In this document: in pieces, positions 39,876-64,000 of the stretch
How the letters are laid out: each line of letters begins with the position of its first letter
How positions within the stretch are numbered: the first letter of the stretch is position 1
Source of the DNA: Takakia lepidozioides
Taxonomy: Eukaryota; Plantae; Bryophyta
Assembly: GCA_030704615.1 (NCBI GenBank)
Contig: CM060733.1
Span: forward strand, 34,720,001-34,784,000
DNA: 64,000 nt
Reading direction: 5' to 3'
The notes under the pieces: model-generated
What the model was told of the DNA's origin: nothing
Database searches by the model: none
The model's input: only the letters and a program-made list of their open reading frames with translations
Translations under genes and position numbers: made by a program

Positions 39876-41387
39876 CTGGTGATAATACTCCTCTTTCTCC
39901 ATTCTCAGGAATAGGAGTACTCCCAAAGTCAGGAATGGGCTTCTGTAAATTAATGGGTTTGTGACTTTGTGAAGGAGAGGATCTTCGAGGGAGCTTCCAA
40001 GATATTCTCAACCTTTGCTCACTTCACGGCACACTGGGCAATCTCACAATCGTTCCTCCAGTTTGATATCACCTACACTACACTACCGCAGGGAAGGGAG
40101 GGTGGGAATCGCGTGGTCGCCCACAGTGTTAAGTCCACTGTAAGGCGCGACGGTGCACTCCCAAATAAGGATTTTGTTACGTGTCCTTCTCGGGTCTGAG
40201 CTACAAGACTCACCTACCAGGTCGAGATCGGAGGTCGAGATCGCTGGAAATTGCTGGATGGTGGAACGGACAATCATGGTCCATTGATGATCTCTCCTGT
40301 GCAGTTTTTATGGTCCGAAGTCTCAACTTTGTTTGGAGACCTGTTCTATATTATGCTCGGATGCAGTTCCGCAACAAGCTGGTGCACAAATCAGTAAGGC
40401 AGCACTTCAGACTGTACAGGTCCCACACCCAGATTTGATCAAGCCCATGATTGAAGGCCACGCCTAGATACCGATTTCTTCTGCATCCTCTTATGTAAAG
40501 CCTCTGAATCTGGCCGAGTAGTCCCTCGATCTATGAAGTACTTTCCAGAACTGTTAGTAGCCCTAAAGATCAGGTTATGCTCTTGTCCCTTGCTGTTCAA
40601 GAGCATATGTGTAGACCCACTACTGACTAGATCGTTATCCAAAGACGGTTAAGTGCTATTGGCTGCTTAGAATGCGAACATAACAATGATCTATAACATC
40701 GCTTGGGAAATTTAGTTGAGAAACTTGACAGTTTGCGCCTGTTCTAATTATAGATCTCTCTAAGAAATCTTGGAGCTGTCCTGAGAAAGAATGTGTCCCA
40801 AAGTGAGTCAAGAAAACGTGGCCCTCCAGTTGAACACCTTGCAGCAGCAGAGCAGCGGCGGCGGCTGAAGCCGTGGTTAAGGGTGCAGGACCTTCGGGAA
40901 CCTACTCCTGTGTAGGACGTCCGTTCATGGTGACCAAGGGGCTGGAGAGGGGGACCGAGATGGAAACACGGAAGAATCTGGAAAGATGGTGGTGGCATGG
41001 GATGAAGGCTACCTTTCAAAATCTCGTTCACGCAGGTCGAATTTTCAGCCAAGAGGCGCAACGTCATGGAAATGGCGGAGGCAGTGGTCTCGTGGCCAGC
41101 AAACATGAGGACGATGAGGTTGTCTAGGATGGCAGCCTCGGTGAGGAACTGTCCATTCTCGTCCGGCGTCGTCAGGAGCACTGGCAGAAGGTCTTGATGT
41201 GCGCGCTATGCAAGTTTGTCTTCGAGTTCCTGCCACGGTACAGATCATCCATGGTCATAACAATACTTTCAAGAACAGTCCCTGATCTCTTGAAAGAAAG
41301 GAGACAGCAACTAAGATAACTAAATTCACCCCTGACTGCAAGTACATCTCATAAATATCGGTCATTTGAGTTGCAATATGTAGCAAG
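38286..41387 (+). repeat. Segmental duplication, copy B (copy A at 2426-5644)
   Basis: Near identity to 2426-5644. Confidence 0.95.
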
Positions 41388-43566: not shown

Positions 43567-45760
43567 ATGAAGATGGAGGCGGGGACAAGGTTTCAACTCC
43601 GCAGAAGCATGCGGGTTCCGCTGTCCCTGATCACAGTGGGAGTGGGATTGATGATTGCATTGCTAGGCCTTGGCGTGTCACGGACATGGGCCCAACAAGC
43701 TGGTTTGTTCTTCATCCCGCTTTCCTAAAACTGAGCTAGACTCCAGAAAGTTCCGTTTCCTGCTAGAAATGTAATACAGCACTCAAGTGTCATGAATTAG
43801 TGAGAATTGGACTATGAACTGTAATTGCTGATATTGAGCCTCAGAGGCAAACAGATTTGGCGGATTATTGGGCTTTTTGGTCCGTGGAAGCAATTCAAGC
43901 AGTTCATCTGGTATGATCACTGCATGATGTGACCACTGATCAGGCCCTCGTGGAAATAAAAAGGAGTAGTAAAATGGGCGTGCGATTGTGGGCTGAATTT
44001 CAGAGTTTATCAGCATCGACTGTGGAGCCAGTCAAGCATATGTTGATCCTGTGACTAACATCTCCTGGGTCCCTGATGATGGCTACATTGCAACCGGGAA
44101 AAGTTGGAAAAACGTTATGGGCAGTAATGACACCACTCTTCAGACTCTTCGATACTTCCCCGAGTCGCGGGGGAAGGACTGCTATATTTTGCAGCCTGTA
44201 CAGGCAGACAACACTTATTTGATTCGTGCAACATTCTCATATGGTTCATACGACGGCCTCCCACCTCCCACCTTTTACCTTGACATAGAGGCGAGCAGGA
44301 GGAGCACATTGACCTTCAACAAGAGCGGTGACTGGGTGGAACTCGAAACAATTATTCTTGCCACAAACAACAGCATTTTCGTCTGTCTTTCCCGCATATC
44401 ACCGTCAGAGACCCCTTTCATTTCTTCCCTGGAGTTGCGCCCTATATTTGCAATGAACAGTAGCTACTTGTTCGAAGGTACATCTCCCGGATCAGTCTAC
44501 TTGTATGGCCACGGTAGAGTGGACCTCGGAGCTGATGCAAACACAGTTGTAAGGTCAGTATTTTCTTAACCTCATGAAACAAGGTAGAAGGTAGGGCATC
44601 CTCATTTTCCTCTGGTTAGAATTGCAAATGAATATCCGCAACTTGTAGGCCTAGTAGAGAGACTGTCGCGAGGGGTCTCCAAGGCTATAATGGGGCTAGA
44701 ATGCGGTCCATGGATAGGACTTCAGGAAAATTAGGTAGCGTGCACCACTTCTGCAGGATCAGTGTACCTAGGAAAGGCACAACTTCGCACATATTTCTAG
44801 GTTTGGATTCATATAAGATGTCCAAGGCACAAATGGCTCAACCACAGTTTTTGAAATTCAGTCCCGAGTCTCTTGGATCATGGACCTTATGCCTCGTTTG
44901 TACTGCATGTCACCAGGTACCCTGACGACCTTTACGATCGCAAGTGGCGTGGTTCGGGGCGCACAGGGTCCAATTATGAATTTCTCAGCACATCCCATGT
45001 AGTGAATGTAGCTGATCTTCTTCAAAATCCACCCACGACCGTCATGCAAACTGCCATAACCTGTTCTCGGGACAAAAGTTTCAATTTTCAGCTTTCCGGA
45101 TTCAAATTATCAAGCAAACTCTTTCTACAATATCCTTTTCTACTTTGCTGAGATACAACAGTTGTCAAGCAACGAGTCACGTTACTTTGACTTCTGTAGT
45201 CACATACTGGCGAATGACGCATTATACGGTACTTGTGTCAATGCATACACTGTTTCTGATAGTGTCGAAGCTATTCACAACTCTCATATCATCATCTCAC
45301 CCAACAAGCCCATGAATGACCAGTCGTATCTCAGCTTCGTTCCAGATTCTAACTCGACTCTGGGTCCCATTCTGAATGCCGCCGAAATTTATGAGATTTC
45401 TCAATCTGTTTCTCCGAGGACATACTATGCAGATGGTAAGTGATCGTCGAAAGTTCTGTGCAGCGGTTTAATTCGGCTGGAAACCCAAGCAAACGGTGAT
45501 TCAAATGAAAATGAAGATGTGATAAGGATTGAGGAAGCTTGATTATCTTTAGCGGGTGTTCCTTGTACATCTTTTGGGGATTAACATTTTCATGGCTCCT
45601 ACTCATCGGAACATGCGTGTGGAATGGATCTTGCAGAAAACGTGATTGACATTGTCAAGATAGCCTTCAATCTGACCGATTGGACTGGGGATCCTTGCTC
45701 GCCAACTCCGTATGATTGGATAGCTTGTACTTCTGACACGCCTCCCAAAGTCTATACTCT
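43567..45760 (+). pseudogene. Malectin-like LRR-RLK N-terminal half (signal peptide, malectin-like domain, LRRNT); no LRR or kinase follows
   Basis: Exons 43567-43702 (signal peptide), 44004-44553 (EFISIDCG, TLRYFP, YLIRATFSYGSYDG, PFISSLELRP), 44917-45436 (YPDDLYDRKW, STLGPILNAAEIY; frameshift ~45130), 45637-45760 (WTGDPC..YDWIAC). Confidence 0.85.
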
Positions 45761-46681
45761 GTAAGCAGCCTAGTTGTTTTTTCTGCTGTTGATTGTTGAT
45801 CGTTGAGCGTCCCCGTCGTCTGTAGATAAGAGGCCCTCACACGCTCTCACTTTTTCTAGGGCCATAGCCAGCTGGCTGAAGACCTTCCTGTTCTCATCTG
45901 AACAGTTTTTTCAGTTTTACATCACTTGTCCCATTGCATCTGCATGAACTTGCAGGTCAGCTTCTCTTGTCTACTCTTTCCTGGTGGGATCCGGTATGAA
46001 ATTATAGACAAAGAATTCTAACTAGTAAAGGATTGTCTGGATTTACATATACTCTACTAATGTGCAGGTTAGATTCTTTCCTATCTGCAATAAGTAAGTA
46101 GCACTTGAAAATCAGGTGTCTTGTACGTATGGTTACATTCCTCGTTATTAGGCAAGAGAATCTGCAATTGAAGGAGTGCAACCCATTACCTAGACGTCGA
46201 TACACGCAGCGTATATCTCTAGCATTTTTTGTCACGCTGAGGAGGGTTGAAAGGCCCCTCTCCTTTGCTTTTTCAGTTTCAAAAACATGACACACGTGTA
46301 CAAACTGTTCAGAATCTAATTTAAGTCTCGAAGCATTTGCTGATACAAAGGGGTCCGGTTGCGAAGTGGTAGCAGAGTGGTACTGACTACGACTGCAGCA
46401 GATTGGAAATGAGAAAGCGACCGATTAATGTTGCAACTACACACTTTACAGATGGCCTTGTTACTCCCCATTTGAAAGAGGTTTCCTCATCCGATTTCTG
46501 ATCCTGACCCGTTTCCAATCACACAGCTCAATCGAAGGAACGTGAACAAGGAAATATCGTTCCACGTGAGCTTACTACAACACGAAAACAATCCAAGTGG
46601 CTGCTCGAATCAACCTCCCCATAGAGAACACCAAAGCATATGGAAGAGCTAGTTGGTTGTTAATTACAAATGTGCAAGAGT

Positions 46682-47848
46682 TCATCTGGGAGAGACGGTG
46701 ATGCTGGAGGCGGACTCGATCAGCTTGCCATTCCTCAACTCGCTCACTGCAGCCAGAGGCCATGTGAATCCCTTCCACAAAAGACTGGTTGCAAGGGGGA
46801 CGTCGATGATGATCTCCTTCTCGGTAGGCTTCTTGGCGCTCCTGACCGCGATTAAATAGCTCCTGCCAACCCATCCAATCCATCCGGCGATGTACAAGAA
46901 TACGATTCCTGGGTAGACAAACTCTCCCAAATGGGCCTGGTCGCCATCAACGATCAAATGAGGAAGACCATCAGTTCCACACAGCAATCCCTCGCTGCCG
47001 TAATAGGCAAACCGTCTCTTGGTCTTCTCAATAGTGGCATTAATAGCCAGTGCCGGTGCGCTGTCAGGTGCGTAGAGTTTTAACCTGCCCTCGAGCTTCT
47101 TGATCTCCTGCTTCTCCCGCTTGGCGAAGCCCTTGCTCTCCTTGCAAGGAGTGAGGCCAGCGATATCAGCCAAGGCGTCCTGGGGGGTAGCAAAAGGGGC
47201 AGTGCTCACAATCGCAGCCAGGGCCAGAGCTGCGGCCATCTTCCCAGCTGTTTCTGCCACGGACTCCTCGCTCTTCGCGCGAGCAGAGAGAAGCAGACCC
47301 CAGAAAGTCAGCTAATAAGATACTCCAAAACCGGTTACATTGCGACATTCACGACATATCCACATTAATGAATCTACGAAGACACAGCGAGAAAAACCTT
47401 CACATTGACACGCTAGCTCAACGCAAATAGCAGATGCGATATATTTCAATACTGGATACTATCAGCCCACCTCCAAAACGAATGTGCCAACAATCTACAA
47501 AGGACAACTACAAGAAAAACAATTATACAATCACTATGACCCCTACTCCGTCTTGCAATTCGAGGATAAACAAGAGTGCACCTTGAACCCAAATCCAATC
47601 CACTAACTAAATTTCGTAGTACTTCCCAAGAAGCATATGTTTCACGAATGCCCTCATCCTCAATCTACGTAGAGTCTGACCTTCACATGCTTGTCAGAAG
47701 TTGCTCGCACAATTAAACAAGGACCCCGGGAGGAGACGGAGGGGGCAGACGACACACGCAATGCGCGCCCACCGAGCAACCTCGGCTGCCGACCAGCATC
47801 CACTCTTGCAGCGGGGGTCACCAACGCCCTCGCAGCTACGCTCGCCAT
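46682..47848 (-). CDS. PSAF: Photosystem I subunit III precursor; exons 47848-47681 and ~47273-46682
   Basis: Transit peptide exon, then [60 protein letters not shown]. Confidence 0.97.
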
Positions 47849-47899
47849 CTCTGCCTTCTTCTTCCTTCATCTGCTCTCCCCCTCCCTCCCTCTTCTTGT

Positions 47900-48380
47900 G
47901 AGAAGCTACACACGTGTGGAGTAGGGCCGGGGTCGGGCCAATGAGAAGCGAGCCTTATCCCCGCCTCACCCAAAATCCCTACTGCGCTTCCACACCGTGC
48001 GATGGGCTTGCACTTTCACACATACGAAGTCATTCATCCATCATATCCGAGAATCATCCGAAAAAATGGCGGTACGAATTTTGAGGAAAAAAAAATTAAT
48101 ATATATATATAATATTCGACTTTCAGAGAATTTTTGTCTAAATTTTCTGAAAAAATGAGGATGAAAGTGATGAAGTGGACTTCGTCACGTCCACTTCATC
48201 ACCACGTCCACGTGACGTCACGTCCACTTAATCACTGTTGGCACTTCATCACTTCGTCATGTCCACTTCATCACTGTGTTTGCCACGTTACGTCACTGTG
48301 TTTTGCCACGTCCACGTGACGTCACGTCCACTTCATCACCGGAAACCACTGTGTACTGGAAACCACGTACACGTGCAAAG
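47900..48380. promoter_or_regulatory. Light-responsive-type promoter of PsaF with adjacent ACGT-rich repeats
   Basis: G-box CACGTG ~47911, CCAAT ~47938, I-box CTTATCC ~47955; repeated CACGTGACGTCACGTCCACTTCATCAC units ~48180-48375. Confidence 0.5.
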
Positions 48381-49250
48381 CTGGGTTCTTTCAGCTGCAG
48401 TGCTGCAAAGAAAATCACCCAACAAAACTTCAAACAAAAACCTGCCTTCATGAGTCATTAGTGAGCAGCTGAAAGAAGGAATCACCCAGTGTTTTTTTTC
48501 TTTTTGTTTTCTTCTCCAGTGTAATTTGATGGTGTAAAATCAACCGGCAGCATATGAATGATGCCATATATATCTTCAAAAAATTTACTAGTAATTACTA
48601 GCGATTGAGAGTACAAATGGAAGTGATGGAAGAGAAGAGAAGTAGGTTGGGATGATTGAGAAGTTTGAATACCATACTAGCCTATGCTATTCGTCTGGAC
48701 CCTGCCGGACTAATTAATTTTTCTTAAAGAAAGGGTCCGGCAGGCTTTTTTTAAATTTCTGCAGTTCCGAAATTTTCATGATAAATAATAAAAAAGCACT
48801 TATATTACATTTGTGTGCGACTAGTGCAGCGGTATTGCAAGTGAAATTGGCAGGGCGGGGTCGAATTTTTGACATTAGATCCTGGGAGGGCTTCATTTTA
48901 AAATTTTCCGGCAGTCTGTTTTTGCATTTAATTTCATTGGACAGCGTAGGCAGGTACTGTAGTTTAGCTTAGCTCGCTTCCCTTTCCTCCCTTCTTTGTT
49001 CTTTCCCAGGTTCTGGGGTTTTTCTATCATATGTTCAAATACCTCATGTTTCATGTTTCCTGTAAATAAAGCTGTACAGGTTTTCATCAACAGAACTGAA
49101 TGTTCTCTCCAAAGGTGTGGTGGATGGGGTGTAGTGGAGGAGACAGTATATCGGTTTTTGTGTGTGAGGGTGAGAAGGAGAGTGCGGGTGTGAAGAATGG
49201 TGTGCTGGAGGTATGGGATGTAGGACGTGAGGCGGAGAAGAGAGAAAGCG

Positions 49251-49937
49251 ATGGCAGGGGGAAGGAGGTTAGAGGTGTGGAGGATGGGTATGGTACGCTA
49301 TGCAGAGGCGCTGGCCCTGCAGAATGAGCTGGTGGCACAGCGCCGTGCAGGGGATATCTGTGATACCGTGTTGTCATTGCAGCATCCCCCAACATTCACC
49401 GTGGGAAAGCGGCGCACTCTCCACAACCTTCTCTCCTCTGCTGACACTCTTCAGAGCCTGGGAGCTGAGGTCCATCATGCTGAAAGGGGTGGCGACATCA
49501 CGTTCCATGGACCCCGGCAGGCAATTCTGTATCCCATAATATCGTTGAGAGAGCTAGGGCTGGGGGCCCGCACGTATGTTGTTGGCCTGGAGGACCATGT
49601 AAGGGCTGGTCTGTACGGGGTGAATGCCAAGGGAAGAATGGAGAAACAGACGGGAGTGTGGGTGGATGACCGCAAGATCGGTGCCATTGGGGTGAGGATC
49701 TCGTCTGGCGGCATTACCTCGCACGGCCTCGCCTTCAACATAGATCCTGATCTAAGCTTCTTTTCACACATTGTGCCATGTGGAATCGCAGACAAGGAGG
49801 TGACTTCTCTGATCAGAGAAAGCTCTTCAGTGGTGCCCAAGGAAGAGGAGGTGACTCAGCAGCTAATTCAGAGCCTTGCCGAAGTGTTTGGGTTTCAAGC
49901 ATTCAAGCGGGCCTCTGATTTGGAGAAGCCCTCATAG
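49251..49937 (+). CDS. LIP2: Lipoyl(octanoyl) transferase, LIP2/LipB, intronless
   Basis: LEVWRMG..LSLQHPPTFTVGKRR..RGGDITFHGP..RKIGAIGVRISS..TSHGLAFNI..IVPCGIADKEVTSL; the helix after GLED looks slightly short. Confidence 0.93.
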   Translation: MAGGRRLEVWRMGMVRYAEALALQNELVAQRRAGDICDTVLSLQHPPTFTVGKRRTLHNLLSSADTLQSLGAEVHHAERGGDITFHGPRQAILYPIISLRELGLGARTYVVGLEDHVRAGLYGVNAKGRMEKQTGVWVDDRKIGAIGVRISSGGITSHGLAFNIDPDLSFFSHIVPCGIADKEVTSLIRESSSVVPKEEEVTQQLIQSLAEVFGFQAFKRASDLEKPS

Positions 49938-51027
49938 GCATGACAGCAAGTGTAAAGCTGAGCACTGTTCTTGATGCAGCTTGCAGCTGTCACCCAACAT
50001 TCACCCAGCAAAGTCTGTCCATACTGCGGCTGGAGCACTGATCATCGAAGACTTGTTAGTGAGAAAGGTACTCATCTACATCTATTTCAAATGGCTTGCT
50101 AAAACACTTCTAATATCTTAACTCATAACCGAGCAGTTTGAAGACAAAACACAAACTGCAGCAGAAGCTGTGTTGACGTGACCAAGGTTCCGCTCTTACT
50201 TTTCGGGACAAGCTTTGCAATGGGGACAACAAGGGGAAGTGCAGAATGGGCAAACTACTAACTACTAACTTCTATAGTGACACTCCTGAAGTTGATATGG
50301 GTCCCTCAAGAGTACCTCAAGTAATTTTATCAATTGATGTGCAGAGCTACCCTAAGGATCAACCCTGCAACAATTCACCGAATATTGTGTAGCTCCTTCA
50401 GCTAGTGCTTCCATGTGACATGCAGTGCATACTTGAGGGGTTTACACCTTGGATTTTACACATCAGGACCTTCATGTCTATGAGACTCATACCTGCCTCG
50501 GTCTGGTGCAGAATCAGTCCGGTGTGAATCAACCAGGCGACAGGAAGCTGGCATTTTCTTGCAGGTCGGTGGCTAATTTGTCTTCATAGGTGCTCTTCAC
50601 TGGATTGAACATTAAGTCACCTGTTGAGGTCAATTAGCCGCACAACCTGCATTTTTGCATTATTTACTCTCTCAAGTCATGCTTCTTCTTGTTAGAAACA
50701 TGCAGTGTTGTATTGTCTTTTAGATCTCAGAAAGATACTCCTGTCTCTATCAGCATGTCAGATTCTGCCAGCTTCAGGCCAGTTGGAGTGTAGACCAGAT
50801 TGACATGTACAGCATATATCATGGACTTCAAAGAAGCCCTTGTCCTTTTGTGCCCTCAAAATGCCATGGATAGTTTTTGCATTGTGCTTCAACATTGGCC
50901 TTGCCCACAGCTCTGGTGCATGGAAGAGCTGCTCAGCACAAAGTGGCAGGGTAGAATCCAAGACCTCTGAGAATCTTGTTGAAGTATCGATTCATTCTGA
51001 AAGGTAAGCAGCTACAAAAGAAGTCTG

Positions 51028-51299
51028 CTATGTGTGGAGGCCATGAAGAAGACTCTCATACTTGCTCAATAAGATTCCTGTGATTTCAAGAGCATCACCC
51101 TTTGGATGAACAGGATATATGTCACTGGCAACCTGCCACTGATTAGTCAGTTCAATCCATCCTTGTCTCTCTAACATCAAATGCAAAAGGTGTATGGTTG
51201 TTGAGTGCTTGCTGCAGATGGTGAATATATAGTGAAGCTTAGAGGTAGATAATAATCACGCACCAGGCCACTCCACATCTTGTTGGCTGCACATAGATC
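51028..51299 (-). pseudogene. Captured fragment: alpha-N-acetylglucosaminidase (NAGLU) C-terminal exon
   Basis: After TTTTTAG acceptor: ANKMWSGLVRDYYLP ... WIELTNQWQ..YPVHPKGDALEITGILLSKY, frameshifted. Confidence 0.7.
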
Positions 51300-51467
51300 C
51301 TAAAAAATGAGTACAACTAAATCCACTCTAGAAGGTTGTGTATGTAGGATGTATGATAGCTATAGCCAAGAATAGAAGGAGGATATTTTCCTAATACACA
51401 TGTGTTTCCAAGAGAAAAAGGACATCACAATGCAAGAAAGAACAGAAGGCACTTTGAGAAAGTTTAC

Positions 51468-51900
51468 TTTCAGCAAAGATGAGCCGTGCCAGATCTTCTA
51501 TGACGCGAATGTCATGATGTGGAGGTGGGCTGATAAGGCCCACTCCCTATGTAGAATTGTGTGATAGCTATGTCTCCAATCACCCTATGGCCCAGCAACT
51601 CTCCACCCTCCTTGGCTCCCTGTTTTTCACATGATAAAAGATTCATCTTAACATTAGCAAAAGAAGCTTGAATCCGAAACACCATTTATGAAAATCATAG
51701 GAGTTCAGTTGCATAAGAAGAATGAATGACGATAAATATGTACCTGGGCCATCTTAATTTGAAGTTCATCAGCGTTGGTGAGAGTGACTCCAAAGTACCC
51801 ACTGGCAGCCTGCTTTATTGCACTGCGCTTTGGGTTCATGAAATCATTTTTGAGAGGTTCAAGCCTTCTTGGATTCTCTCCTCCCTCACCTACACTCATC
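51468..51900 (-). pseudogene. Captured fragment: NADH-glutamate synthase (GOGAT), two exons with intron retained
   Basis: [41 protein letters not shown], intron 51743-51620, then GAK.EGGEL.GH.VIGDIA...[18 protein letters not shown]. Confidence 0.88.
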
Positions 51901-51980
51901 ATAATCTTGTCAAAACAAACACAACTGTGACAAAAACTAACAAGAGATATTCTACATTGACTGCTATGTCGTGCGCATAC

Positions 51981-52051
51981 ATATCGCTACACAACTACAT
52001 CGTTGTCCAAACCACACCACACATATATGCACCATAAAGTAGTCTGCCACA
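51981..52051 (-). repeat. Block A': inverted copy of the first 71 bp of the 3' LTR (62866-62936)
   Basis: 68/71 identity by manual comparison. Confidence 0.92.
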
Positions 52052-52052
52052 A

Positions 52053-52412
52053 TGATTGACAAGCTAAGAGACACACTGTTCACACCAGAAACAACATGAA
52101 TCCATCAGCATCACTCTTTAAAAACAGAAGTCGAGCCAAGGGCACCCCAAGCTATGGGGACTCCACCCCACAACAACCTATCCTCCTATCATAAGCACAC
52201 TCAGTTCTAAACGCATGAAGGAGCTCGGTCGCGCAGGCTCAACTCGAGAGAGATGAGCTGCGCGACTGACGCTCTCGTGAAGATAAGATGGTTCAGGTGT
52301 CAAACTCAAACTTGACACCTGACTTAACACTTGAACTAAATCCAAGTGTTAAATACAAATAACTAGTTTTATTCTAGTTAGTTTCACACTGTGTTTATTT
52401 AACTTGACAGCT
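52053..52412 (+). repeat. Block B (~360 bp), direct repeat with 63539-63899
   Basis: TGATTGACAAGCTAAGAG...TTTAACTTGACAGCT in both; internal hairpin TCAGGTGTCAA-n8-TTGACACCTGA. Confidence 0.95.
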
Positions 52413-52484
52413 GTCGTGCGCATCATCTGCTTCTCGGAGGGTTTTCCGTAAAGGCCCGGAGAATTTAATCCATACAATGGCAAC

Positions 52485-52758
52485 CTAGGTGAGGTACCGA
52501 ATCAACTCTGAAGCAGTGGCTATGGCGCCACCAGTGATTGCCGTGCGAATCATCTTGTCGTGATTAAAAGTGATCACGCTTTGTCACCCTTTCGTTCTTC
52601 AACATTGAGAAGGCCTCTAGCAATGTTCCATGAGTAGCTTCCACCCCTCCAATCTTGATGAAGCCGTCCAAAGTGTAGTTCAGAAAAGGATGGCCCAAGT
52701 CCACCAGCACATCTATAGTGGGAGAGTCAACTCTTGCTGATAGCCTCGAGTGCGGCAT
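52485..52758 (-). pseudogene. Captured intronless OEP16-like chloroplast outer envelope porin, internally deleted
   Basis: MPHSRLSARVDSPTIDVLVDLGHPFLNYTLDGFIKIG...; after deletion HDKMIRTAITGGAIATASELIRYLT-stop; UTR-like flanks. Confidence 0.85.
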
Positions 52759-52855
52759 TTCGCTCTGCTTTTCACACCCAAGTTCTTCTTTCCTGCATCG
52801 GCAACAAATCTCTCTCTGCTGTCGCTGACGGATGGAGAGAGACACGGAGAGATGG

Positions 52856-53043
52856 AGATCTCATTGATGGCAAGAATCTGCCCGTGGGACCTCTTCACCT
52901 TCTTCAACTTCTGAGGAAGTACCAAAACTTGGACTTTGCCCGCACCTCGTTGGTCGCCCACAACGTCATGCGGTACGCCTTCGGCTGCTCATCGGTTGGG
53001 GTAGGCAGTGCTCGCCCCACCACCTGGTACTGGTGAAACTCAT
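52856..53043 (-). pseudogene. RPL18A: Captured 60S ribosomal protein L18a (eL20) 5' fragment
   Basis: [43 protein letters not shown] / [18 protein letters not shown], frameshifted. Confidence 0.93.
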
Positions 53044-53121
53044 GGCTCCTGCCTGCTCTCTCTCTCGGATCAGCAGAAGCTAGAAGGAGCGCGAGACGGC
53101 CAATGCAGGGCGCTGCCGAGT

Positions 53122-53611
53122 CTAAAAAGGTAGGCTCATAACCATTGGTTGCAATGGCCAGGATGGCGAAACCAATGGCATGACCCAGAGCTCCCCAAGC
53201 AAGCACATCGACGAGGGTGAAACCAGCGGGGTCATTCGTCTTCAAAAAGCCAACGACCTCCTGTGCCCGGCTATCACCTCCTCGAAGTGAGTAACGCCAT
53301 TTTGTACAGGAGTCATTGCCTTGCAACATTGTCTCTCTGGAAGGGGAGGAACACAAATCGTCCCAGAAACAGAAGAGCTCCGGTGCTCAAGGAGATCACA
53401 ACCGCTGCATTGCATGTGGTCTTCGCCGAGGACTTGGCGATTCTAGTTTGGCTCGAAAACGACCGGTTGCTCATTGCCAGGGAATCCAGTCGGTTGCCAG
53501 ATCGCAGGCCGGGGAAGCTGGCCTGGACGGAGGCCACTCTTGCAACCTTCTCTTCCCGGACAGAGTGGGAATGCCAGTGGCCACCCATGAAGATGCAGCA
53601 CAGGCAGCCAT
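53122..53611 (-). pseudogene. PSAG: Captured full-length photosystem I subunit V (PsaG) copy, frameshifted
   Basis: MAACAASS transit peptide; [29 protein letters not shown]; [49 protein letters not shown]. Confidence 0.92.
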
Positions 53612-55554
53612 TATTGAAACAAACCGTATCAAAATCTGCACAAACTGTAGGCGAAGCTTCAGAGACGGGCGCTGTGTGCAAAGATCTGTGCAAGACCTGC
53701 GAGCTAGAGCGACAAGCCTGTGGTGGTGCACCTGTAACTGCAAATGAAACCTGGGAACGGTTTTTAATGGCGGTTTTTAACGTTTTGGTGTTAAAAAATA
53801 AAAATAAAAAATAAAAATAAACCTTTTGATCTAATTTAAATGATTTAGAGCCTGGTTGGCCATATCTTTGTCAAATGAGCTCCGTTTGACTCAGTTTTGG
53901 GGGGATAGCTGCAGAAAGGGGAAATCTACTTATCTAGACCTGGTTTCTTTTTTTGGGACTCTGCTAAAAATCTATGGAATTTTTAGAGTGTGAGTGTGCC
54001 GTGAAAGATCCACAATTCTGTTTCTAGAACCTGTTCTGGTCTATTTGAGAGACAAATCTGTGGATGTCCTCCTTGTATGGCTGGGGGAAATGAGGACGTA
54101 ATTGAAGGGCAGGTCTCTTCTCTTAGCTTGTGCACACAATGGGACAGGATTTATGTTTCCCAAGGAACTCAGACTGATTTGAGTGGAGAACAGTTGGACG
54201 AGTTGATTGCATACTGGGAGTCAGGCATTAGCAGTAGACAACAGACTGCTGTAGTTGGCGTTGAGGGCCTCAATATCGCTTTGGACAGTCAGAACTCTGT
54301 TGGAGCCAGCAGTTCTGCAGCTGTAAGTGAAATACCAAAGTGGGTGAAAGCTAGGCTTGGAACACAGCCAAAGACAGCCCCGGGGACCAAGGTGTTCAGC
54401 CACAGGCTGTGGTGTACTGGAGCAGAGGAGCAGGAGCTACACAAGTTTTTGTGCAATCAGATAGCGTTGCAGCCGGACACGCTCTGCACAAGGCAACCAC
54501 GAGCGGGGTTTCATTAGCGAGGACAAGTTTGTTCTGTTTGAAAGGAGATGCAGTCATTCGCAATGAGACACCCGCACCGTTTCAAAGCTTTCGAGTTGAG
54601 AGACTATTAGACCCTACCTTTGTTTTCTTTAGTGTTCAGTGAGCGGGACAGCAGAGTGTTGCTTTGTCTCTACCTGGCAGAAAGAGGAGGAGGGTTGGTT
54701 AGAGCGAGCTACTGTAGTAGCTTGGGACAAGGTTAGTGGCAGGTTTCTGGACATAGATAACCTCCTACCCTACCATCATGTAGAGCGAGCACTTTGAGAG
54801 AAGTCGGGAGTTGATAGCATAGATCAGGATTAGATCTTGCTTGGGCAGGCTTCTATGTTCCCCTCCATCTCTGACTATTTTCATTACCTTGTACTCGTAG
54901 TTGCCAAAGCCTCTCTTGGTGGAGGCCAGTCAGTCCGGGGTTTTGGGCTGGGATATTCTGCACGATCAGCATTGCAGCTGGATTTTGGTGTGGGGGGTGT
55001 TGATGTTTGATTTCTTGTGTTTGGATCCCCCCCAACACCTGCATGCTTGACTGTGCGCCATGTTGGTTTTTGTGTGGGCGCTTGCTTTCATAGGGATTAT
55101 TATTTCGATCACCGGTCAATCCTAGAGTATGCTGTCGGTGGTGAGGCTGGAGTGATGACCCAGCAAGACCACCAGTGTTTCTTCTATGGTGAGCTGGGTT
55201 GATGACCAGCCAACCATATATAGTTCTTGCGGTGGATGCAGGTGCAAGGTGCCCTGAGCCATTGGGATATGATCCTTAGACTGCAACAGGTGCCCACCCG
55301 TGTCACTATTAGATTAGTACTAGAGCCTTATAGTGTCACTGGAGAGAGGTGCACATTGTGAGTGTCATTACAGAGTTACCCAAGGGTTTTGAGGGGAGTA
55401 CGGCTACAGGCAGTAACAGTGAGAGTGGTTCACAAGACGAGGTATTCGGTTCAGACCACCTTCAACCGCCACCCTCAACTATTGTAGAGTCAGACACAGA
55501 CTCGGAGGCTTCATCAAACATGTGCAGTTTCATTTTCGCCATTGTTGGGGACGA

Positions 55555-56880
55555 CATGGAAAGGATGTATGGAGCTACCAAGGGGCCTCGTAGGTACTCT
55601 GGAGCTGTGGGCACAATCGAGTTGGATGACTTTATATCCAGGAGTTCGACAGCTGGTGTGATTTGCAGCAGATGCGCAATCCACAACTATTCACCCCATT
55701 CATGGCGTGGAAGGGACTGTTCCAGCATTTGGAAGGCCCCGCCTATGGACGATTACCACGAGTTCAGGCGAGGACATGAAGCAAGAGATTGAGGAGTGGA
55801 GGATGTATTGGTCACCCCTGACTATGTTTCCATTACTGGAGGCACGATGCGACCAGTAGCTGCAATCAGTAACCAATATCTCCCACTGCCAGCACTATGA
55901 GTAGTGGAACAAATAGTGCCACTTCTGCAGGTGGTACTAGTTCAAAAGGTGCTACTACTCCTCCTGCCACGACTACAACACATGTGCCTAGATTCAACCC
56001 GGTGGTGGAGTTCTTCCAGGAGTTGCGGAGGAATTACCAAGATGTACGGACAGAGAAGCTGCGAAGTTTGCAAGACTTCCAGCGCAAACCCAATGAAAGC
56101 CTGCGAGAGGTACACTCGTATGAGGCGCTTGATAAGTGTGACCCAAGGGGTTACTGAAGCTCAGGCAATCCAATTTTGGTATGGAATTCTGGACAAGGAG
56201 CTCAAGAGAAGGGTGCGAGATGCAACCCTGTTACAAGCAGCCCAACCCACATTAGCAGATGTGTTTCTGCTGGCTGAGCGGATTGAGCTCAACATGTGAG
56301 GAGCGAGTTGTCACCATTGGATTTGGCAAGGACATGCCTGCACGAGGCGCAGCTGCCAGCCCACAAGCACAAGGTACTGCCCAGCAACGTGGTCAGGGGG
56401 GCAGGTTTCCCAACCCAAGTTCCATGGATTTTATAGGGGACCTCAGGTGCAGAGGCCCGTGGCATCTTTTACAGGCCAACAACAACCAGGGGTGGTATGT
56501 TGGACATGTGGAGGACCCCATGTCAAGAAGATTGCCCAGAGAATGGCAGAAGGCCGGCACACACAACCTGCACAGTTGCAGTGTGGGCATTGTGGCAAGT
56601 ATGGACATGGAGATGCCCAGTGTTATGACTTGCACCTTGAGTTGCGCCCAGGCCAGTTCCAAGGGAACAATGGTGGCCGGGGGCGAGGTGGACCAGCCCA
56701 GAGGACGAGGTGGTCGGGCACGAGGTGCAGGCCAAGGGCAAGCTCAACATGGCCAAGGACGCGGAGGTCAGGGTGTTGCCAAGGCATGGCCAACCGGCTT
56801 CAGCAGCTAGAGCAGAGGCTCGCTGCCATGGCTACAGCTCAGGCGGTACCGGCTCCCAGGCGGGATGGTCCCACCTCCTG
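55555..56880 (+). CDS. Gypsy gag (frameshifted) with two CCHC zinc knuckles
   Basis: KLRSLQDFQRKPNESLRE; FWYGILDKELKRRV; CWTCGGPH and CGHCGKYGHGDAQC. Confidence 0.8.
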
Positions 56881-57499
56881 TTCCTGAGGGGAGATATGGG
56901 CATGGGATTCATGTGCGGAGCAACACTACCACTAGAGTAGGTGGAGTCTGCTGCAGCCGTGACTCGAGGAGCAGCACGAGTTCCTGAGCCACGAGGTGTA
57001 GAGGTGGAGTTGGATCCACAACGTGGGGAGGCAAGCCGTCAAGCGAGGCTGCCTCAGTCATTCATCTTGGCGGAGACAGTGTCAACACACCATGGCACCT
57101 AGTTTCTCGCCCGACTGTTACCGAGGCGGAGGGTTCTATGCCATTGGGGAGAGCTACACGTGCAATACTGACCTGCTGCCAAGGCTAGTGCAGCCGGTGT
57201 GTTGTTGGGGGCAGCCACCTCTGTGTGTCAAGCCCCCACTGTTCTCGGCAACCATGATTGCGACGCCGGGGGTAGACCAGCTGCAGTGTTCAGACTAGCA
57301 GCAACACTCTGTGAGAGTGGGGAGTCACTTCATCTTCTTCGGAGTTAGTGGAAGGTATAGTGGCAGAGGGATCCTTGGATTGAGGGTCACTGCCATGGCT
57401 GCGCCATGGCAAGCTGCAGCTGCCAGGTTGACGGAGCTGCCAGCTAGGCCAGCCTTTGAGCGCGCCATGGTGAACACCTGGAGTTGTCTTGTTAGACAC

Positions 57500-57860
57500 C
57501 AGGGAGGCATTTTCACTTGAGTGGACCGGCAGGCAAGAAGTACCGGCCACTGCGGGTCTTGTTGGACTCGGGAGCTCAGCCACTGATTTTGGGAGCTGCT
57601 ATTGCAGGTTTGGGCCATGGAGGCGGATATGGAGCCTTGTCTTTCCAGATACAGACATCTCTGGGAGGATCAGAGCAGGCTCGGGCATGACACGGCGTGA
57701 GTTGGCCATTGGAATACAAGCAATCATCCTGTAGATGGTCAGTGATGCGAGCCAAGGCCATTGTGACAGACGCGGTCTCTTACGATGTCCTCGTTGGTGG
57801 GGCAGTGTTATATCCCATGGGCTTCACCCTGGACTTTTGGGAGGAGTCAGCATCCTACAG
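57500..57860 (+). CDS. Retroviral-type aspartic protease (frameshifted)
   Basis: VLLDSGAQPLILG at ~57556-57595; YDVLVGGAVL. Confidence 0.85.
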
Positions 57861-58257
57861 CCTGGATGGCAGTCAGGGATGGTCATCGTGCACAGCTCCC
57901 GTGACATTCATTGGGGGTATTGCGGCTGCCCAACGGGGCAAGATGCCAACACTAGCCGCCTTTACAGCTGCAGTTAGTTGGCCTGGAGAGTTGCTGGAGG
58001 GCAATGCCCATGCAGAGGATGTGCCACCTCCAGCAGAGCAGGATGACATGCATGGTATGGCGGAGTTGTCTGCCATGGTTGCTCACACTCCATTGTGGGG
58101 TACGAGCAAGGATTTGCAGCAGGTTGCGGATCGACGGGTGCAACAAGCCTGGGTAGAGGCTTTTGTACCGTCAGAGAGGAGGAGAGTGCGGGTATTGCAC
58201 CAGGACCACCTCAGTTGTCACCACATTGGATACCACACCTATTGTGGCAGTATATGA

Positions 58258-59225
58258 TGAAGGAATTTGCCTTCTGGACTTGTTTGGCGGGATCAGCACC
58301 GGATTGGCTGCTGTGCTATAGGCAGGTGTGCGACTAAGGCGTTACCTGTATGTGGAGAGGGATGAGACTGCACGACGCGTCTCATTGCACCATGTGGCTC
58401 AGTTGGTACAGCAGTACCCTGACTTGTTGCCTGTTTCTGCAGTTTGTGGATACCAACAAGCCTTATCAGCAGACATTTCATTGTTGGGGGCGCAAGATTT
58501 GGAGCAGGTTGGCTCCATTGATCTGATAGTGGCAGGTTGGCCCTACCAAGGGCATTCATCAGCCGGGCATGGCAATGGATTGCGAGACTCGAGGACGGGT
58601 CTGTTTTGGGAGATGGTGCGGGTTTTTTGCGCCACTTGCAGCTTCATCAAGCTGTATCTCCAGCATACATCTTGGAGAATGTGCCACTGATGGGTGATTC
58701 TCGGGCCAGGGTGATGGCCAGTGTGCATCAAGTCCGGTCGTGGCTTGGGTCAGCAGTGCTGCTGGATGCAGCTGCAGTGGGATCACGGGCTCATCGTCCA
58801 CGGCTTTGGTGGACTAACTTGATGCCACTCATACTGCTCAAGCATGCATTTGATGGGGTGCAGCGGCCAGCACACCTCACCGTGGATGGCATTTTGGACA
58901 CAGGGAGGCAGTCTCAACATGTGAGACACGATGACCGTTCGCCTTTGGCAGTGGTCAACAGGGTGTCAACCACGAGCAGCATTACCTACACTGCTCAGTT
59001 TCCCAGGATCCCATGCTTTTCGGGATGGTGGACCTGGCCTCTTGTGGGATAGCCAGTTGCAACAGTTAGTGGAGCCTAATGCCGACAGCGAGAGCGGGCT
59101 ATGGGATTTTCCACTGGGACCACGGCGGTGCCTTCTCTTTTTGAGGCATCACGTTGTCAGGTGTTGGGGCAAGCAATGGATCTCAATTGCTTGACCTGGA
59201 TTATCAGCTTGGCTATGGCTGAGCA
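58258..59225 (+). CDS. DNMT3-like C5-cytosine DNA methyltransferase domain inside pol (disrupted)
   Basis: Motif I LLDLFGGISTG; II YLYVERD; IV IDLIVAGWPYQGHS; TGLFWEMVR; VI YILENV; VIII DAAAVGSRAHRPRLWWTNL; IX-X ERAMGFSTGTT...RCQVLGQAM. Confidence 0.93.
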
Positions 59226-59639
59226 ACGTAAAGTGCGGAGTGCCCTTCCCTTGACGGTCTCTCTGCCTACCGAGACGGTACAGGCAGCGAGTGGGGGCGA
59301 GCCGGTGAGGACCACGGGGTGTAGACATCCATGGCACACGTGGGAGGTGCTCGAGTTCAGAGGAGTTGGCAGCCAAGGCAGCTGTGATGGATGAGGTTGG
59401 GGATTCTTCTCGGGATGAGGAGGTTCTCAATGATGAGATGATGGGGCAGGATGAGGCCTTGTCATTGACTGAGTAGAAGGGAGTACTGCTCAAGAGGTTG
59501 CAGCATAGCAACCACGGGACGCGTCCTCTACCTCTAAGCCCACGGACTTAAGGTTGCAGTTACGGAGGACAATTGGGAGCCTGACATTGGACCCATTGTC
59601 ACCGGAGGAGAGAGACGACGTATACGGCGGTTCCGAGGG

Positions 59640-61010
59640 CTTACAGGAATTGCTTTGCCTTCAGTTTGAAGGACTTGAGCACTGAAGGGTCAAGAGATCC
59701 GTATTGAGTTGGCCACTGACACGCCAATCTTTCGGAGACCCTATAGATACAGTGACATGGAGAGGTCTTTGATTCAGTTGAGGACTCAAGATCTCTGGGA
59801 GGCAGGTTTGGTGGAGTTCTCTGATGGAGAGTATGCTTCAGCCACAGTGATGCCAGCCAAGAAGGATGTCTATGGCAATTGGACGGAGAGACGATGTGTG
59901 CGGTGATTACCGGCCTGTTAATCGTCAGACCAAGTCCAATATGTATGCCATGCCGACACCAGAGGAGATCTTTGATGCCATTGGGCATTCCAAGGTCTTT
60001 AGCACGTTGGATTACGATCCGGATATCACCAGTTGCCGATCAAGGAGGCGGATAAGCAAAAGACGGCATTCTGGGGGATCAATGAGCACGGGAAGGATTG
60101 CCTATACCAGTGGCGGTTTTTACCATTTGGCTTAAAAACGCTCCCGCTGAGTTTTCAAGAGTCATGGACAGGATTCTAGCAGGGTGGAGTTTGCTCGGTG
60201 CTACATAGATAACATCATCATCTTTAGTGCTACGGTGGAGGAGCATGAGAGACACCTTCAGGGGGTATTTGAGCGCTTAAGGACGCACGGATTGAAGTTA
60301 CATCCAGGCAAGTGCAAGTTTTTCCACAACCAGATTGACTATCTGGGTCACATGATATATCCTGGAGGATTGGGGGTACAGCAGACTAAGGTAGAGTCCA
60401 TTGCACATGTTTCCACGCCCCACGGATGTGAGCCGAGTTCGAGCTTTCATGGGTTAGCAAACTATTACAGACGGTTTGTTAAGGGATTTAGTGCCATTGC
60501 AAAGGCTCTAACCAAGCTGACCAAGGTGGACCAGGAGTGGCAGTGGGAAGATGAGCAAACAAGCTTTTCAAGAGCTCAAGGCGAGGTTAACCTCGGCGCC
60601 CATCTTGAGACGACCTATCAGGGGGCGTCCTTTTCAGCTACATACAGATTGGAGCATGCTGGGGCTTGGAGCGGTGCTCACATAGGTGGATGATGAGGGA
60701 AGAGAGTTCGTAGTGGCTTATGCTAGCCGCTCGAACAATGCTGCAAGTCAAGTATAGCTCATATGAGGGAGAATGCTTAGCTGCAGTGTGGGCCGTGGCA
60801 CACTTCAGGTGCTATCTATACGGCAATCTCTTCACCCTTGTCACGGATCACCAACCACTCAAGTGGTTGATGGAGTTAGACAAGCTTACGGGGAAGCTTG
60901 CACGGTGGGCACTCATCCTTCAAGAGTATGACTTTCAGGTGGTGCATCGACCGGGTTTGGTCAATCGCAATGCAGATGGGTTGAGTCGCAATCCATGCAC
61001 GAGCCAGCAG
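59640..61010 (+). CDS. Reverse transcriptase and RNase H (frameshifted)
   Basis: PIFRRPYRYS; CGDYRPVN; FSTLD; PFGLKNAP; CYIDNIIIF; KCKFF..YLGH; GLANYYRRFVKGF; YSSYEGECLAAVWAV..TDHQPLKW. Confidence 0.95.
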
Positions 61011-61379
61011 GATGACACTGGAGCTCGGTGGCATGGTGAGATGGACGAGGAGATGGTGCCCGGATGGCATGCATCTGCATTTCTGTGTATCTTGGCAGCG
61101 GAAAGCCAGGTTGGACCTGCAACAGGGATGACTGTAGATCAAGTGTCTGAGGACCCTGAGGCCAGAATGAGCAAGGTGGCGCCAAAGATATACATGGGTT
61201 CAGTTGTGTTGGACTACCTCCGCACTGGAGACACTGCAGCCACTGTGACTGCCAAGGAGAGGGATCGGATCCTACAACGAGCCAAGAGGTTCAAGTGGGA
61301 GGGGACACACCTGCTCCGAGTGTGGGAGGATGGTCGAGTGAGGGACTGTGCCTCACCCAACACAGCGGGCACGGTTAGT

Positions 61380-62400
61380 GCGGCATGCCCATGAGGAGTT
61401 GGGGCATTTTGGGGTGCGACGCACTCATAGTCTACTGCAGGGGCAGTATTGGTGGCGTGGTATGCACACAGAGGTGCAACAATTTGTGGCTAGGTGTGGT
61501 GTGTAACAGGTGCGTGCTTCATTCAACGCCCCTACTCCACAATTGCACCCTCTTCGATCATGGGATTGGGCTACAGGTGGAGTCTTGACTTCGCAGGGCC
61601 GTTGCCACTGACCATGCGTCACAACAAGTACGTATGCATTTGGAGAAGTGTTGGTTCCATTGCCTGATAAGGCTAGTGAGGGAGCTGCGTATACATTCTT
61701 GGATTGTGTGCTTAGCCGATTCGGTGCTCCAGCTGAGGTATTCACGGACCAAGGGAGAGAGTTCTTGGGGGAGTTTCAGGCTTTGTGTGACAAGGCCTTG
61801 ATAGACCACCGCACCACTTCTCGGGATCATCATAAGGCCGATGGCTTGGCAGAGAGAGTTGTTCAGACAGTAAAGAGGGATTTGCGCAAGTATGGCTTGC
61901 AGAAGGGACACCTAGGAGATTGGGACCTTCAGTACCCCTGGTTAGCCATGGGCTACAGGTTCAGCAAGCAAGCATCACTTGCCTCCTTCTCACCATACTT
62001 TCTTCTCTTTGGCCGAGAGCCGGATTTGCCTATATCCATTCGCAGAGAAGCTGCTACAGTTCTTAATCTTGACGATCCAGACGTGTGGGCACGTGCATGT
62101 GAGCAGCGTGCAGAGTTGTTCAAGAAAGTCATGCCCATGGCTTTCGAGAACCTTGCCATTGCACAACCGTGATACGTTGAGGTATGCTACCATACGTGGT
62201 GGGGGCTATCGTCCTGGGGTTCGGAGATTCAACCCTGGTGACTATGTCTATCTGCAGCAGACTGCTCCTACGACCTTGGATGTGACTGCATGACGTGTTA
62301 TTTTGAGGGTTCGAGAGGTCTTGCCCTCAGGCGTCTTGGTCTTGGAAAGTCGGGATGGCATCACTTGGAAGGACCATGTGCGTAATTGTGCGCCATGTCA
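61380..62400 (+). CDS. Integrase (HHCC zinc finger, rve core, C-terminal region)
   Basis: HEELGHFG..YWWRGM; WSLDFAGPLP; RFGAPAEVFTDQGREF; DGLAERVVQTVK; SPYFLLFGREP. Confidence 0.93.
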
Positions 62401-62459
62401 CCTTCCGAATGTCGATGGCAGGATTGACCCAAACCTGGCAGTGGTATCTGCAGGTTTGA

Positions 62460-62605
62460 GGTGCATGTTGTGTGGGTCTGCTAAAGGGGCAGCCACCATG
62501 ATGGTGTGTGATCGATGCTCTAGAGGTTGGCATATGGGATGCTTGACTCCACCTCTTGAGATGGTTCCGGATGCGGATTGGTTATGTCCACATTGCATTG
62601 GATAG
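62460..62605 (+). CDS. PHD finger at the integrase C-terminus
   Basis: CMLC...MMVCDRCSRGWHMGCLTPPLEMVPDADWLCPHC, canonical C4HC3 with PPL..VP...W.CP.C. Confidence 0.95.
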
Positions 62606-63538
62606 TGGGAGTGGATACAACCATGGAAGACTAACAAGAAACGCAAGGCCCAGCTACTAGGAGACCTTGAACACACGAGGTCCTGGCTCAAGTTCACAGA
62701 TTGCAAGACGACGACTAACGATGGGGCTACTCTTGTACCCGGGCTCTTGGTCTATAGAGTTTGAGTACAATAGGGACAGTGATAGAGGACTTAATACGGC
62801 TGTGGCTATTACATCTTGTAGCTATCTGGAGGTAGAGGGACCTATCCACCAGCTAGGGGGGCGATTGTGGCACACTACTTTATTGTGCATATATGTGTGG
62901 TGTGGTTTGGACAGCGATGTAGTTGTGTAGCGATATATAGATTGCCCGTCAGATTCTGCTTGTAAATCAATCTTGTTAGCCAGCGATTGCAGGGCCTGCA
63001 CCTGGAGCTCCAGGAACATCAATAATCAGCAATCTCCTCCAGCAAAATGGCTTTAAGCGGAACTCACTGGCTCAATGAGTTCCAGATCAATAACCTTTCC
63101 AAACCTGCCTTCAAATGCTCACCCCTGAGATCAGAACACCTGCCAAACACAACTGTCAGATGCTCAATCTACACAGTTGATGAGAACACCTGTGCCACAT
63201 GTCTTCAGACATCATCTTTTGATTAAATCGCTCAAAGCACTCGCTTGCATGTGACGTTTCTACACATATCCGCCACTTCACCATAGCGTAACCGTCACCG
63301 CGTCCTCAACGAGGTTGTGTGAAGTCCCCAGCAATTGCAGAAGGAAGGCAGAACATGTCAAGCTGCCAAGGGAGCCGGAAGACGTGAAGTTCCGTCTTAA
63401 AAATACGTTGCGTTTGCCCATTAAAGTTGCACTATCAACTAACACCTCCATCCGTTTCTCACTTTCAAAACAAAAACCACAAGTGCTAAAACTAAACTCA
63501 CCTCCGGCACTCACAGATGCAAGCTCATCTCTCTCGAG

Positions 63539-63899
63539 TGATTGACAAGCTAAGAGACACACTGTTTACACCAGAAACAAAATGAATCCATCAGCATCAC
63601 TCTTTAAAAACAGAAGTCGAGCCAGGGGCACCCCAAGCTATGGGGACTTCACCCCACAAACAACCTATCCTCCTATCATAAGCACACTCAGTTCTAAACG
63701 CATGAAGGAGCTCGGTCGCGCAGGCTCAACTCGAGAGAGATGAGCTACGCGACTGACGCTCTCGTGAAGATAAGATGGTTCAGGTGTCAAGCTCAAACTT
63801 GACACCTGACTTAACACTTGAACTAAATCCAAGTGTTAAATACAAATAACTAGTTTTATTCTAGTTAGTTTCACACTGTGTTTATTTAACTTGACAGCT
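63539..63899 (+). repeat. Block B, second copy, inside the putative 3' LTR
   Basis: Near identity to 52053-52412. Confidence 0.95.
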
Positions 63900-64000
63900 A
63901 CTACAGAGTTTCTTAAGGGGATCCAGATTTTATATTGCCCAGAGAAACAGCCAAATTCTCCTTGTGCTTTTGTGTTCTCCAGCCGAAATCTAAGACTCTG

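Follow-up and report, generated by a model that had tools for sequence, protein, structure and literature searches.

Template jumping by the reverse transcriptase of mammalian long interspersed nuclear elements (LINEs) makes chimeric retrocopies, such as U6-L1 and mRNA-mRNA fusions. Maize Bs1 is said to have captured three host gene fragments. The capture of gene fragments by plant long terminal repeat (LTR) retrotransposons was surveyed in rice and sorghum (PMC3726574; reviewed in PMC13317346), and the accepted cause is a switch of the reverse transcriptase to another RNA in the particle (PMC3726574, PMC13317346). KnitGypsy-Dnmt3 of the alga Klebsormidium is a Gypsy element that carries a DNA methyltransferase (DNMT) and whose repeats are laid out as A-coding-B-A-B (de Mendoza et al. 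2018, PMC5890265). The idea that antisense or captured cargo makes silencing costly was published for maize as "epigenetic conflict" (Muyle et al., bioRxiv 10.1101/777037), and a gymnosperm survey found that the cargo-bearing elements of Platycladus gained no methylation advantage (PMC13477047). Here we describe a chain of host-gene pieces inside a retrotransposon of the bryophyte Takakia lepidozioides. The window, which is the whole stretch that we analysed, comprises 64,000 nucleotides (nt; positions 34,720,001 to 34,784,000 of contig CM060733.1, forward strand, assembly GCA_030704615.1), and all coordinates are positions within it. One integrated and decayed Ty3/Gypsy copy carrying DNMT3 and a PHD finger occupies 51967-63896 (11,930 bp), and pieces of PsaG, RPL18a and OEP16 lie within it. 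We lean towards reading this chain as a chimeric processed pseudogene, now dead, that a reverse transcriptase produced and that the element carries in its internal leader. The chain has no function of its own.

Three host-gene pieces joined head to tail

The chain is a minus-strand array from 52424 to about 53757, in which PsaG, RPL18a/eL20 and OEP16, three unrelated host genes, follow each other head to tail. The earlier note had read this arrangement from the letters, and it was borne out by Pfam, structure or protein matches for each gene. All three pieces are frameshifted. In each of them the start codon and a leader are kept and the 3' part is absent. As the note had also claimed, there are no introns and no poly(A) between the pieces: neither an A run nor an intron-like insert was found within or between them, and only leader-like stretches separate one piece from the next.

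The PsaG piece (53125-53757, minus strand) holds the 5' untranslated region (UTR) and the entire coding sequence, with the ATG at 53611-53609 and the last codon at 53128-53126, and its 3' UTR is absent. Its 5' limit was demonstrated only as far as 53717. The reading frame is shifted near 53315 and 53285. The piece matched Pfam PSI_PSAK (3.9e-12), and its top match among solved structures was moss PSI-G (6l35_G, 2e-22).

Next to it lies the RPL18a/eL20 piece (52857-53124, minus strand). It consists of a leader of about 80 nt, an ATG at 53043-53041 and codons 1-66, which end as ..AINEI at 52857, with two frameshifts. It matched residues 3-48 of plant eL20 (2.7e-22), and tblastn with rice eL20 extended this match to ...AINEI.

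OEP16 is present in two parts, both on the minus strand. The first (52572-52856) holds a leader and codons 1-62, with the ATG at 52758-52756, and its frame breaks at 52572. The second (52424-52571) holds the last 28 codons, the stop at 52487-52485 and 61 nt of 3' UTR down to 52424, without poly(A). The internal gap between them amounts to 56 codons. Residues 1-62 gave 98 representative matches (best 2e-14) with about 52% identity to OEP16/Tim17 proteins of 135-156 residues (e.g. 147 amino acids), and these proteins contain Pfam Tim17. The open reading frame (ORF) at 52485-52577 aligned with the C-terminus of two OEP16 homologues (P0121 and P0122).

We compared 51000-56900 with Logan contigs (not raw reads) at 85% likeness. 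Run X1 is DNA of the species, X5 and X9 are of the same species and guessed to be RNA, and X6 is an independent plant metagenome DNA sample from another study. In the RNA-like contigs (X5 and X9), three separate transcripts matched 53125-53717, 52860-53052 and 52572-52813, and beyond each end they were unlike the window. The PsaG parent (X5 record 11 for 53125-53639 and X9 record 30 for 53125-53717, each about 97% alike) continues with TAG and its own 3' UTR. For OEP16, X5 record 10 and X9 record 28 match from 52572 or 52593 to 52813 and are about 94% alike; past 52572 the parent goes on as ..LEKVVKESGR, which confirms the internal deletion that the earlier note had seen. The RNA-like contig at 52860-53052 is about 85% alike to the RPL18a piece and is perhaps a paralogue. 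Another contig passes 52856 as ..EKYPTTIKN, so the proposed 3' truncation of RPL18a held as well. Since each piece has its separate RNA-like contig, the donors are separate expressed genes, and the RPL18a truncation and the OEP16 deletion are features of the chain that the donors lack.

The loose ends of the parental contigs at 52572, 52813, 52856 and 53125 are the joints of the chain. Wherever the parent is known, the overlaps at these joints are 0-3 nt. No RNA-like contig from X5 or X9 crosses any joint, so there is no sign that the chain is expressed. The PsaG/RPL18a joint is bridged by an independent DNA contig (X6 record 19, 53046-53310), which means that the chimera is not an artefact of assembly. 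A second contig of the same sample (X6 record 17) covers 52423-52572 at 95% and diverges on both sides.

Over 515 nt, PsaG and its parent disagree at about 14 positions, which implies that the two share identical stretches of more than 24 nt. In the ORF-based homologue searches the OEP16 ORF gave no candidates, the best matches of the PsaG and RPL18a ORFs were 85-88% alike and came from other species, and an ORF of the leader behind the chain (54077-54517) gave nothing.

The carrier element and the place of the chain

The element is bounded by TG..CA: on the plus strand 51967 begins TGTCGTG and 63896 finishes CTTGACA. A perfect 4-bp target-site duplication, GCTA, reads directly at 51963-51966 and 63897-63900. 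The end repeats consist of a 360-nt unit (a) and an 88-nt unit (b) in a permuted layout. Read by the polarity of the termini, i.e. on the minus strand, the order is unit a (63896-63540), leader part X (63539-62940), the internal region, unit b, unit a (52411-52054) and unit b (52053-51967).

Unit b at 51967-52053 (minus strand) is the right-hand end of the element by its own polarity and comprises a 76-nt block A and 12 further nt. It is present in very high copy, and its block A (51978-52053) is 95% alike to 62864-62939 in inverted orientation. In 65 contigs of X1, other copies continue differently before 51967. A metagenome scan with a 27-mer from block A gave no match. The 3' copy of unit a (52054-52411, minus strand) is 98% alike to 63539-63899. 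The 5' copy (63540-63896, minus strand) is a direct repeat of this left block and forms the terminus ...CTTGACA. It is followed by part X (62940-63539, minus strand), the first portion of the leader by the polarity of the termini; two ORFs in 62940-63538 were without a Pfam match, so no host-gene fragment was found there.

The inner unit b is split. Its last 12 nt stayed in place (52412-52423, minus strand, an exact repeat of 51967-51978), and the other 76 nt (block A) lie on the opposite strand at 62864-62939. The break is clean, with an overlap of 1 nt. The displaced 76 nt are still attached to a polypurine tract (62852-62863, which together with them makes up 62852-62939 on the plus strand), as well as to the PHD finger, integrase, RNase H, reverse transcriptase and DNMT. 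The decayed gag-pol (55349-62851, plus strand) gave Pfam matches for DNMT at 58328-58690 (PF00145, 1.7e-07), reverse transcriptase from 60184 (RVT_1, 1.1e-12), RNase H from 60720 (RT_RNaseH, 4.8e-20), integrase at 61648-62172 (rve, 4.4e-05, below the Pfam cut-off) and the PHD finger at 62303-62605 (6.3e-11). The simplest reading is that the whole coding segment, 52424-62939, is inverted relative to the ends of the element, and this inversion could be older or younger than the integration. Its joints are 52423/52424 (J1) and 62939/62940 (J2).

The chain lies at J1, between the 12-nt stub of unit b and the conserved, very high-copy leader (53758-55348, plus strand), which has no second copy in the window. 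The earlier note had placed the chain inside a 5' LTR, between a block B and an LTR end at 55288. Block B is indeed repeated (52053-52412 equals 63539-63899 at 98%) and is our 3' copy of unit a; the end at 55288 found no repeat support. We found no match to 53758-55288 in 62864-63896 or elsewhere in the window, and both RNA-like and DNA contigs continue straight across 55288 (e.g. X5 record 13, 54809-55412). The stretch is therefore a conserved leader and not an LTR. With the element bounded by TG..CA and GCTA at 51967 and 63896, the chain is outside any end repeat, and the placement within a 5' LTR had to be given up. The chain lies in the internal leader of the element. Block B adjoins the chain, and the inversion of the coding segment against the ends explains why it points opposite to gag-pol. 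Turning the segment back, with the chain as part of it, gives the order a, X, chain (antisense), conserved leader, gag-pol, b, a, b, which is an ordinary family member with cargo in its leader.

To estimate how many copies carry the chain, we used the summed depth of X1 contigs. It was 130-200 in the left flank, 1.2e5 to 6.3e5 at 51788-52575, 450-1000 in the chain (52576-53757) and 9e4 to 7.5e5 at 53758-56900; contig depth is a poor copy count, but a difference of two to three orders of magnitude can be relied on. Taken singly, unit a at 52054-52411 had a summed depth of about 6e5, as against about 1e2-1e3 in the cargo, and the conserved leader at 53758-55348 had 9e4-5e5. The chain is thus a low-copy island amid very high-copy family sequence and not a family-wide component of the repeat. 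The window allele reached a depth of 449 at 52716, where the parental allele had 107, and the corresponding depths at 52997 and 53009 were 306 and 151; contigs of the single-copy flank had 60-107. One X1 contig (record 6) carries two variants (53519 and 53520) that are present neither in the window nor in the RNA-like contigs. These data hint at a handful of chain-bearing copies, and the chain probably travelled with a small subfamily; the one copy seen as sequence is that of the window.

Several further features of the element were observed. An intact 10-nt palindrome, GACAGCTGTC, lies at the a/b boundary (52406-52415) and was verified by script. Without its central GC, GACAGCTGTC falls into two halves, and these are the chromosomal ends of the element (51963-51969 and 63890-63900). 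Together with the GCTA duplication, such ends fit the integration of an end-joined or circular DNA copy through the internal site. Directly behind the 5' end repeat, at the expected primer-binding site, 18 nt (63539-63522) are perfectly complementary to 63729-63746 in unit a and likewise to 52242-52259, which makes them a candidate for self-priming of reverse transcription. No tRNA-iMet box was found near the element and no tRNA gene in the window. A likeness of 55289-55303 to a tRNA-Lys site was dropped as a candidate primer site. The 12-nt repeat (51967-51978 and 52412-52423) was also considered as the target duplication of a 435-bp insert, and this was rejected since the 65 contigs assign the 12 nt to the repeat family as the tail of unit b. 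The same repeat was rejected as a self-priming site complementary to the LTR, since the supposed complement is the same segment read from the other strand.

Origin of the chain and rival explanations

We compared the pieces with the intron sites of the corresponding genes in other plants. In Selaginella, introns interrupt the OEP16 gene (L006) after residues 38, 55.3, 66, 77.3 and 100, and the chain reads through the first two positions uninterrupted. The second of them corresponds to 52593, where the RNA-like contig X9 record 28 ends. The rice RPL18a gene (L003) has introns after codons 5, 44 and 65; the chain crosses the first two without an intron and ends 4 nt past the third. In the fern RPL18a loci, the gene ranges indicate introns. 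Judged from these sequences, an mRNA origin is well supported for two of the three pieces, OEP16 and RPL18a. Exon skipping was ruled out as the source of the OEP16 deletion, because both of its ends fall inside exons of the Selaginella gene. The deletion may instead be a slip of the polymerase or a later loss.

The earlier note had proposed that the reverse transcriptase switched templates onto mRNAs. The part of this proposal that stood is that processed mRNA copies were joined by jumps: the pieces are collinear with mRNA, lack introns at conserved sites, keep their 5' parts and are without poly(A). The evidence on introns comes from other plants. In the mechanism that we propose, a single DNA strand would be copied 3' to 5' along RNA, starting inside the OEP16 3' UTR. 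It would skip 56 codons on its way to the OEP16 5' region. At or near the OEP16 5' end it would jump to RPL18a codon 66, and from the end of RPL18a to the last codon of PsaG, and then run on to the PsaG 5' end. The pieces are antisense to gag-pol and their order toward gag is OEP16, RPL18a, PsaG. Since a minus strand that strays onto mRNAs would yield sense cargo, antisense cargo needs either a straying plus strand or a free cDNA that was patched in. The straying strand would most likely be the growing plus strand of the element within the leader, or a free cDNA patched in there. A later inversion of the coding segment would then have put the chain beside the 12-nt stub of the end repeat.

Several points weigh against this origin. 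The RPL18a leader (53044-53124) and 43 nt of the OEP16 leader (52814-52856) have no match among the parental transcript contigs, and the parental OEP16 contigs extend about 394 nt upstream of 52813 with a different sequence. PsaG is uninformative on introns, as Ceratodon has one intron, Riccia has none and a DNA contig with the parental alleles crosses the site, and for the other two genes the intron sites are taken from other plants. Completeness at the 5' end stands here for the start codon plus a leader, which may fall short of the true 5' ends of the three parental mRNAs. That the chain resided in the leader before the inversion is an inference from this one copy of the family. The plus-strand step is a proposal drawn from the antisense orientation and order of the pieces, and contig depth is a poor basis for the finer copy counts.

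At 52814-52856 we observed that the parental contigs carry instead a sequence that finishes with ...TGTGC ahead of AG. A first exon joined by splicing, an alternative start or a tiny fourth fragment could each account for the 43 nt of the window.

The main rival is a filler at the inversion joint. A free chimeric cDNA would have been ligated into J1 when the 9.2-kb coding segment was cut out and rejoined inverted, be it in a DNA copy not yet integrated or in the chromosome. In this case the chain would never have travelled. Capture of cDNA at double-strand breaks is known in yeast and mammalian cells, which we counted in favour of the filler. The chain also sits exactly at one inversion joint, beside the clean break of unit b with its 1-nt overlap, and the other joint (62939/62940) is without filler. 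However, the alleles of the chain lineage are several-fold deeper than the single-copy flanks, and this, together with the X1 contig with private variants, suggests several copies. Moreover, if the leader already held the chain, a simple inversion by two breaks would do, with both joints clean, which is more economical. We consider the filler unlikely, although it is the explanation to which most weight should be given after the preferred one.

Much less probable is an aberrant minus-strand copy, in which synthesis would start from the 3' end of the element RNA, leave it after 460 nt and pass onto the three mRNAs, much as happens in LINE-made chimeric retrocopies. By the polarity of the termini the chain is sense and lies directly before the last 460 nt (12 nt of b, then a and b), the order and polarity of 51967-53757 fit, and every piece is complete in its 5' part. 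On the other hand, this gives no reason why the strand goes on into 9.2 kb of oppositely oriented gag-pol and closes with the correct 5' repeat and a target duplication, and it needs several further unlikely jumps.

We regard it as very improbable that a Pack-MULE, Helitron or CACTA element captured the chain as DNA, or that the chain is an assembly chimera. In favour, the neighbouring fragment of a glutamate synthase (GOGAT) gene still has introns, but this fragment lies outside the target duplication of the element. We found no inverted repeats flanking the chain (about 52.4-53.8 kb) and no 9-bp duplication around it, and the pieces are collinear with mRNA across conserved intron sites. The marks of Pack-MULE, Pack-CACTA or Helitron capture were thus not found, the fragments being intronless and without inverted repeats, while Helitron termini had no dedicated search. 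The assembly chimera is countered by the PsaG/RPL18a joint in the independent DNA sample. The hallmarks of a LINE-type processed pseudogene were also not found at the chain: the OEP16 3' UTR ends 61 nt past the stop without an A run, and the flanks are element sequence.

The least probable explanation, a 5' LTR of more than 3 kb (52053-55288) in a plus-strand element with its 3' LTR running from 62864 beyond the window, draws on the repeat of block B at 63539-63899 and the polypurine tract before 62864, but the element ends at 63896 with TG..CA and the 4-bp duplication, 62864-63896 matches neither 53758-55288 nor the chain, the 76 nt after the polypurine tract recur inverted and not direct at 51978-52053, and contigs cross 55288 unbroken.

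Returning to the copy made by the element's reverse transcriptase, the leader of this family might be a recurrent capture slot, where the plus-strand reverse transcriptase would run onto abundant capped mRNAs up to their 5' ends. One such chain is seen here, and we hold this reading to be unlikely. If it were true, many copies would carry different, mostly antisense and 5'-complete pieces, which would amount to a built-in antisense RNA against housekeeping and photosynthesis genes.

Surroundings and comparison with known systems

The element is inserted in an intron of the GOGAT fragment (51000-51966, minus strand), a pseudogene fragment that kept its introns (Pfam Glu_synthase, 2.2e-09 and 1.2e-04; PDB 7mfm_G residues 895-945). 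Its exon ends ...KMAQ, followed by gt, and the fragment is frameshifted. A second GOGAT copy, 88-96% alike, is present in DNA and RNA-like contigs. Seemingly intact host genes lie to the left of the element at 44051-49937. They begin with a malectin-like receptor kinase from 44051 (plus strand) and include PsaF, whose single intron separates 47848-47660 from 47260-46682 (minus strand), and a lipoyl/octanoyl transferase ORF that has no introns (49227-49937, plus strand). That a real photosystem I gene, PsaF, lies 5 kb from the PsaG pseudo-copy is probably due to chance. Elsewhere in the window, two direct repeats of about 3.2 kb (2426-5644 and 38286-41387) are 97-99% alike and 35.8 kb apart; they probably represent the LTRs of a further large element that holds nested insertions. 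The stretch 25172-25638 is a tandem array of five units, which measure 86-110 nt and share a short palindromic core (…CAACCTTGCGTTGACGCAAC…).

The chain is an ordinary by-product of retrotransposon copying, host-fragment capture by LTR elements being already known, and a dead pseudogene chain alone says little of host biology. Its value is that of a clean fossil of reverse transcriptase behaviour, with three consecutive jumps and each piece retaining its 5' part, in a family with unusual permuted ends. If the leader proved to be a preferred, mostly antisense capture site across the genome, it would offer a testable model of how LTR elements acquire host sequence. It would then also be a natural data set for asking whether captured gene pieces shield elements from silencing. 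For annotation, the ends, the target duplication, the internal palindrome and the inverted core indicate that the "LTRs" of this family are easily mis-drawn.

Compared with the plant LTR retrotransposons that captured gene fragments, this locus is alike in having intronless pieces of several unrelated host genes within the element's own ends and target duplication. It is unlike them in that the cargo is antisense to gag-pol and lies in the 5' leader instead of replacing coding sequence. It also differs in being a strict chain of pieces that keep the 5' part and lack the 3' part, and in the permuted end repeats of its carrier.

As in the LINE chimeras, unrelated RNAs are fused head to tail and all point the same way, and the joints fall at the 5' end of the downstream template or close to it. 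However, the chain has neither poly(A) nor a target duplication of its own, and it sits in an LTR-type element.

The epigenetic conflict proposed for maize holds the same idea as the earlier note raised, namely that small RNAs against the cargo-bearing element might also hit the donor genes. For this locus it is a hypothesis, and the copy is dead and rearranged.

As for the carrier, it resembles KnitGypsy-Dnmt3 in that both belong to Ty3/Gypsy, have a cytosine-5 DNA methyltransferase within pol and show A-coding-B-A-B repeats. Unlike KnitGypsy-Dnmt3, for which no host cargo was reported in Klebsormidium (PMC5890265), it has a PHD finger after the integrase, an inverted coding segment and a land plant as its host.

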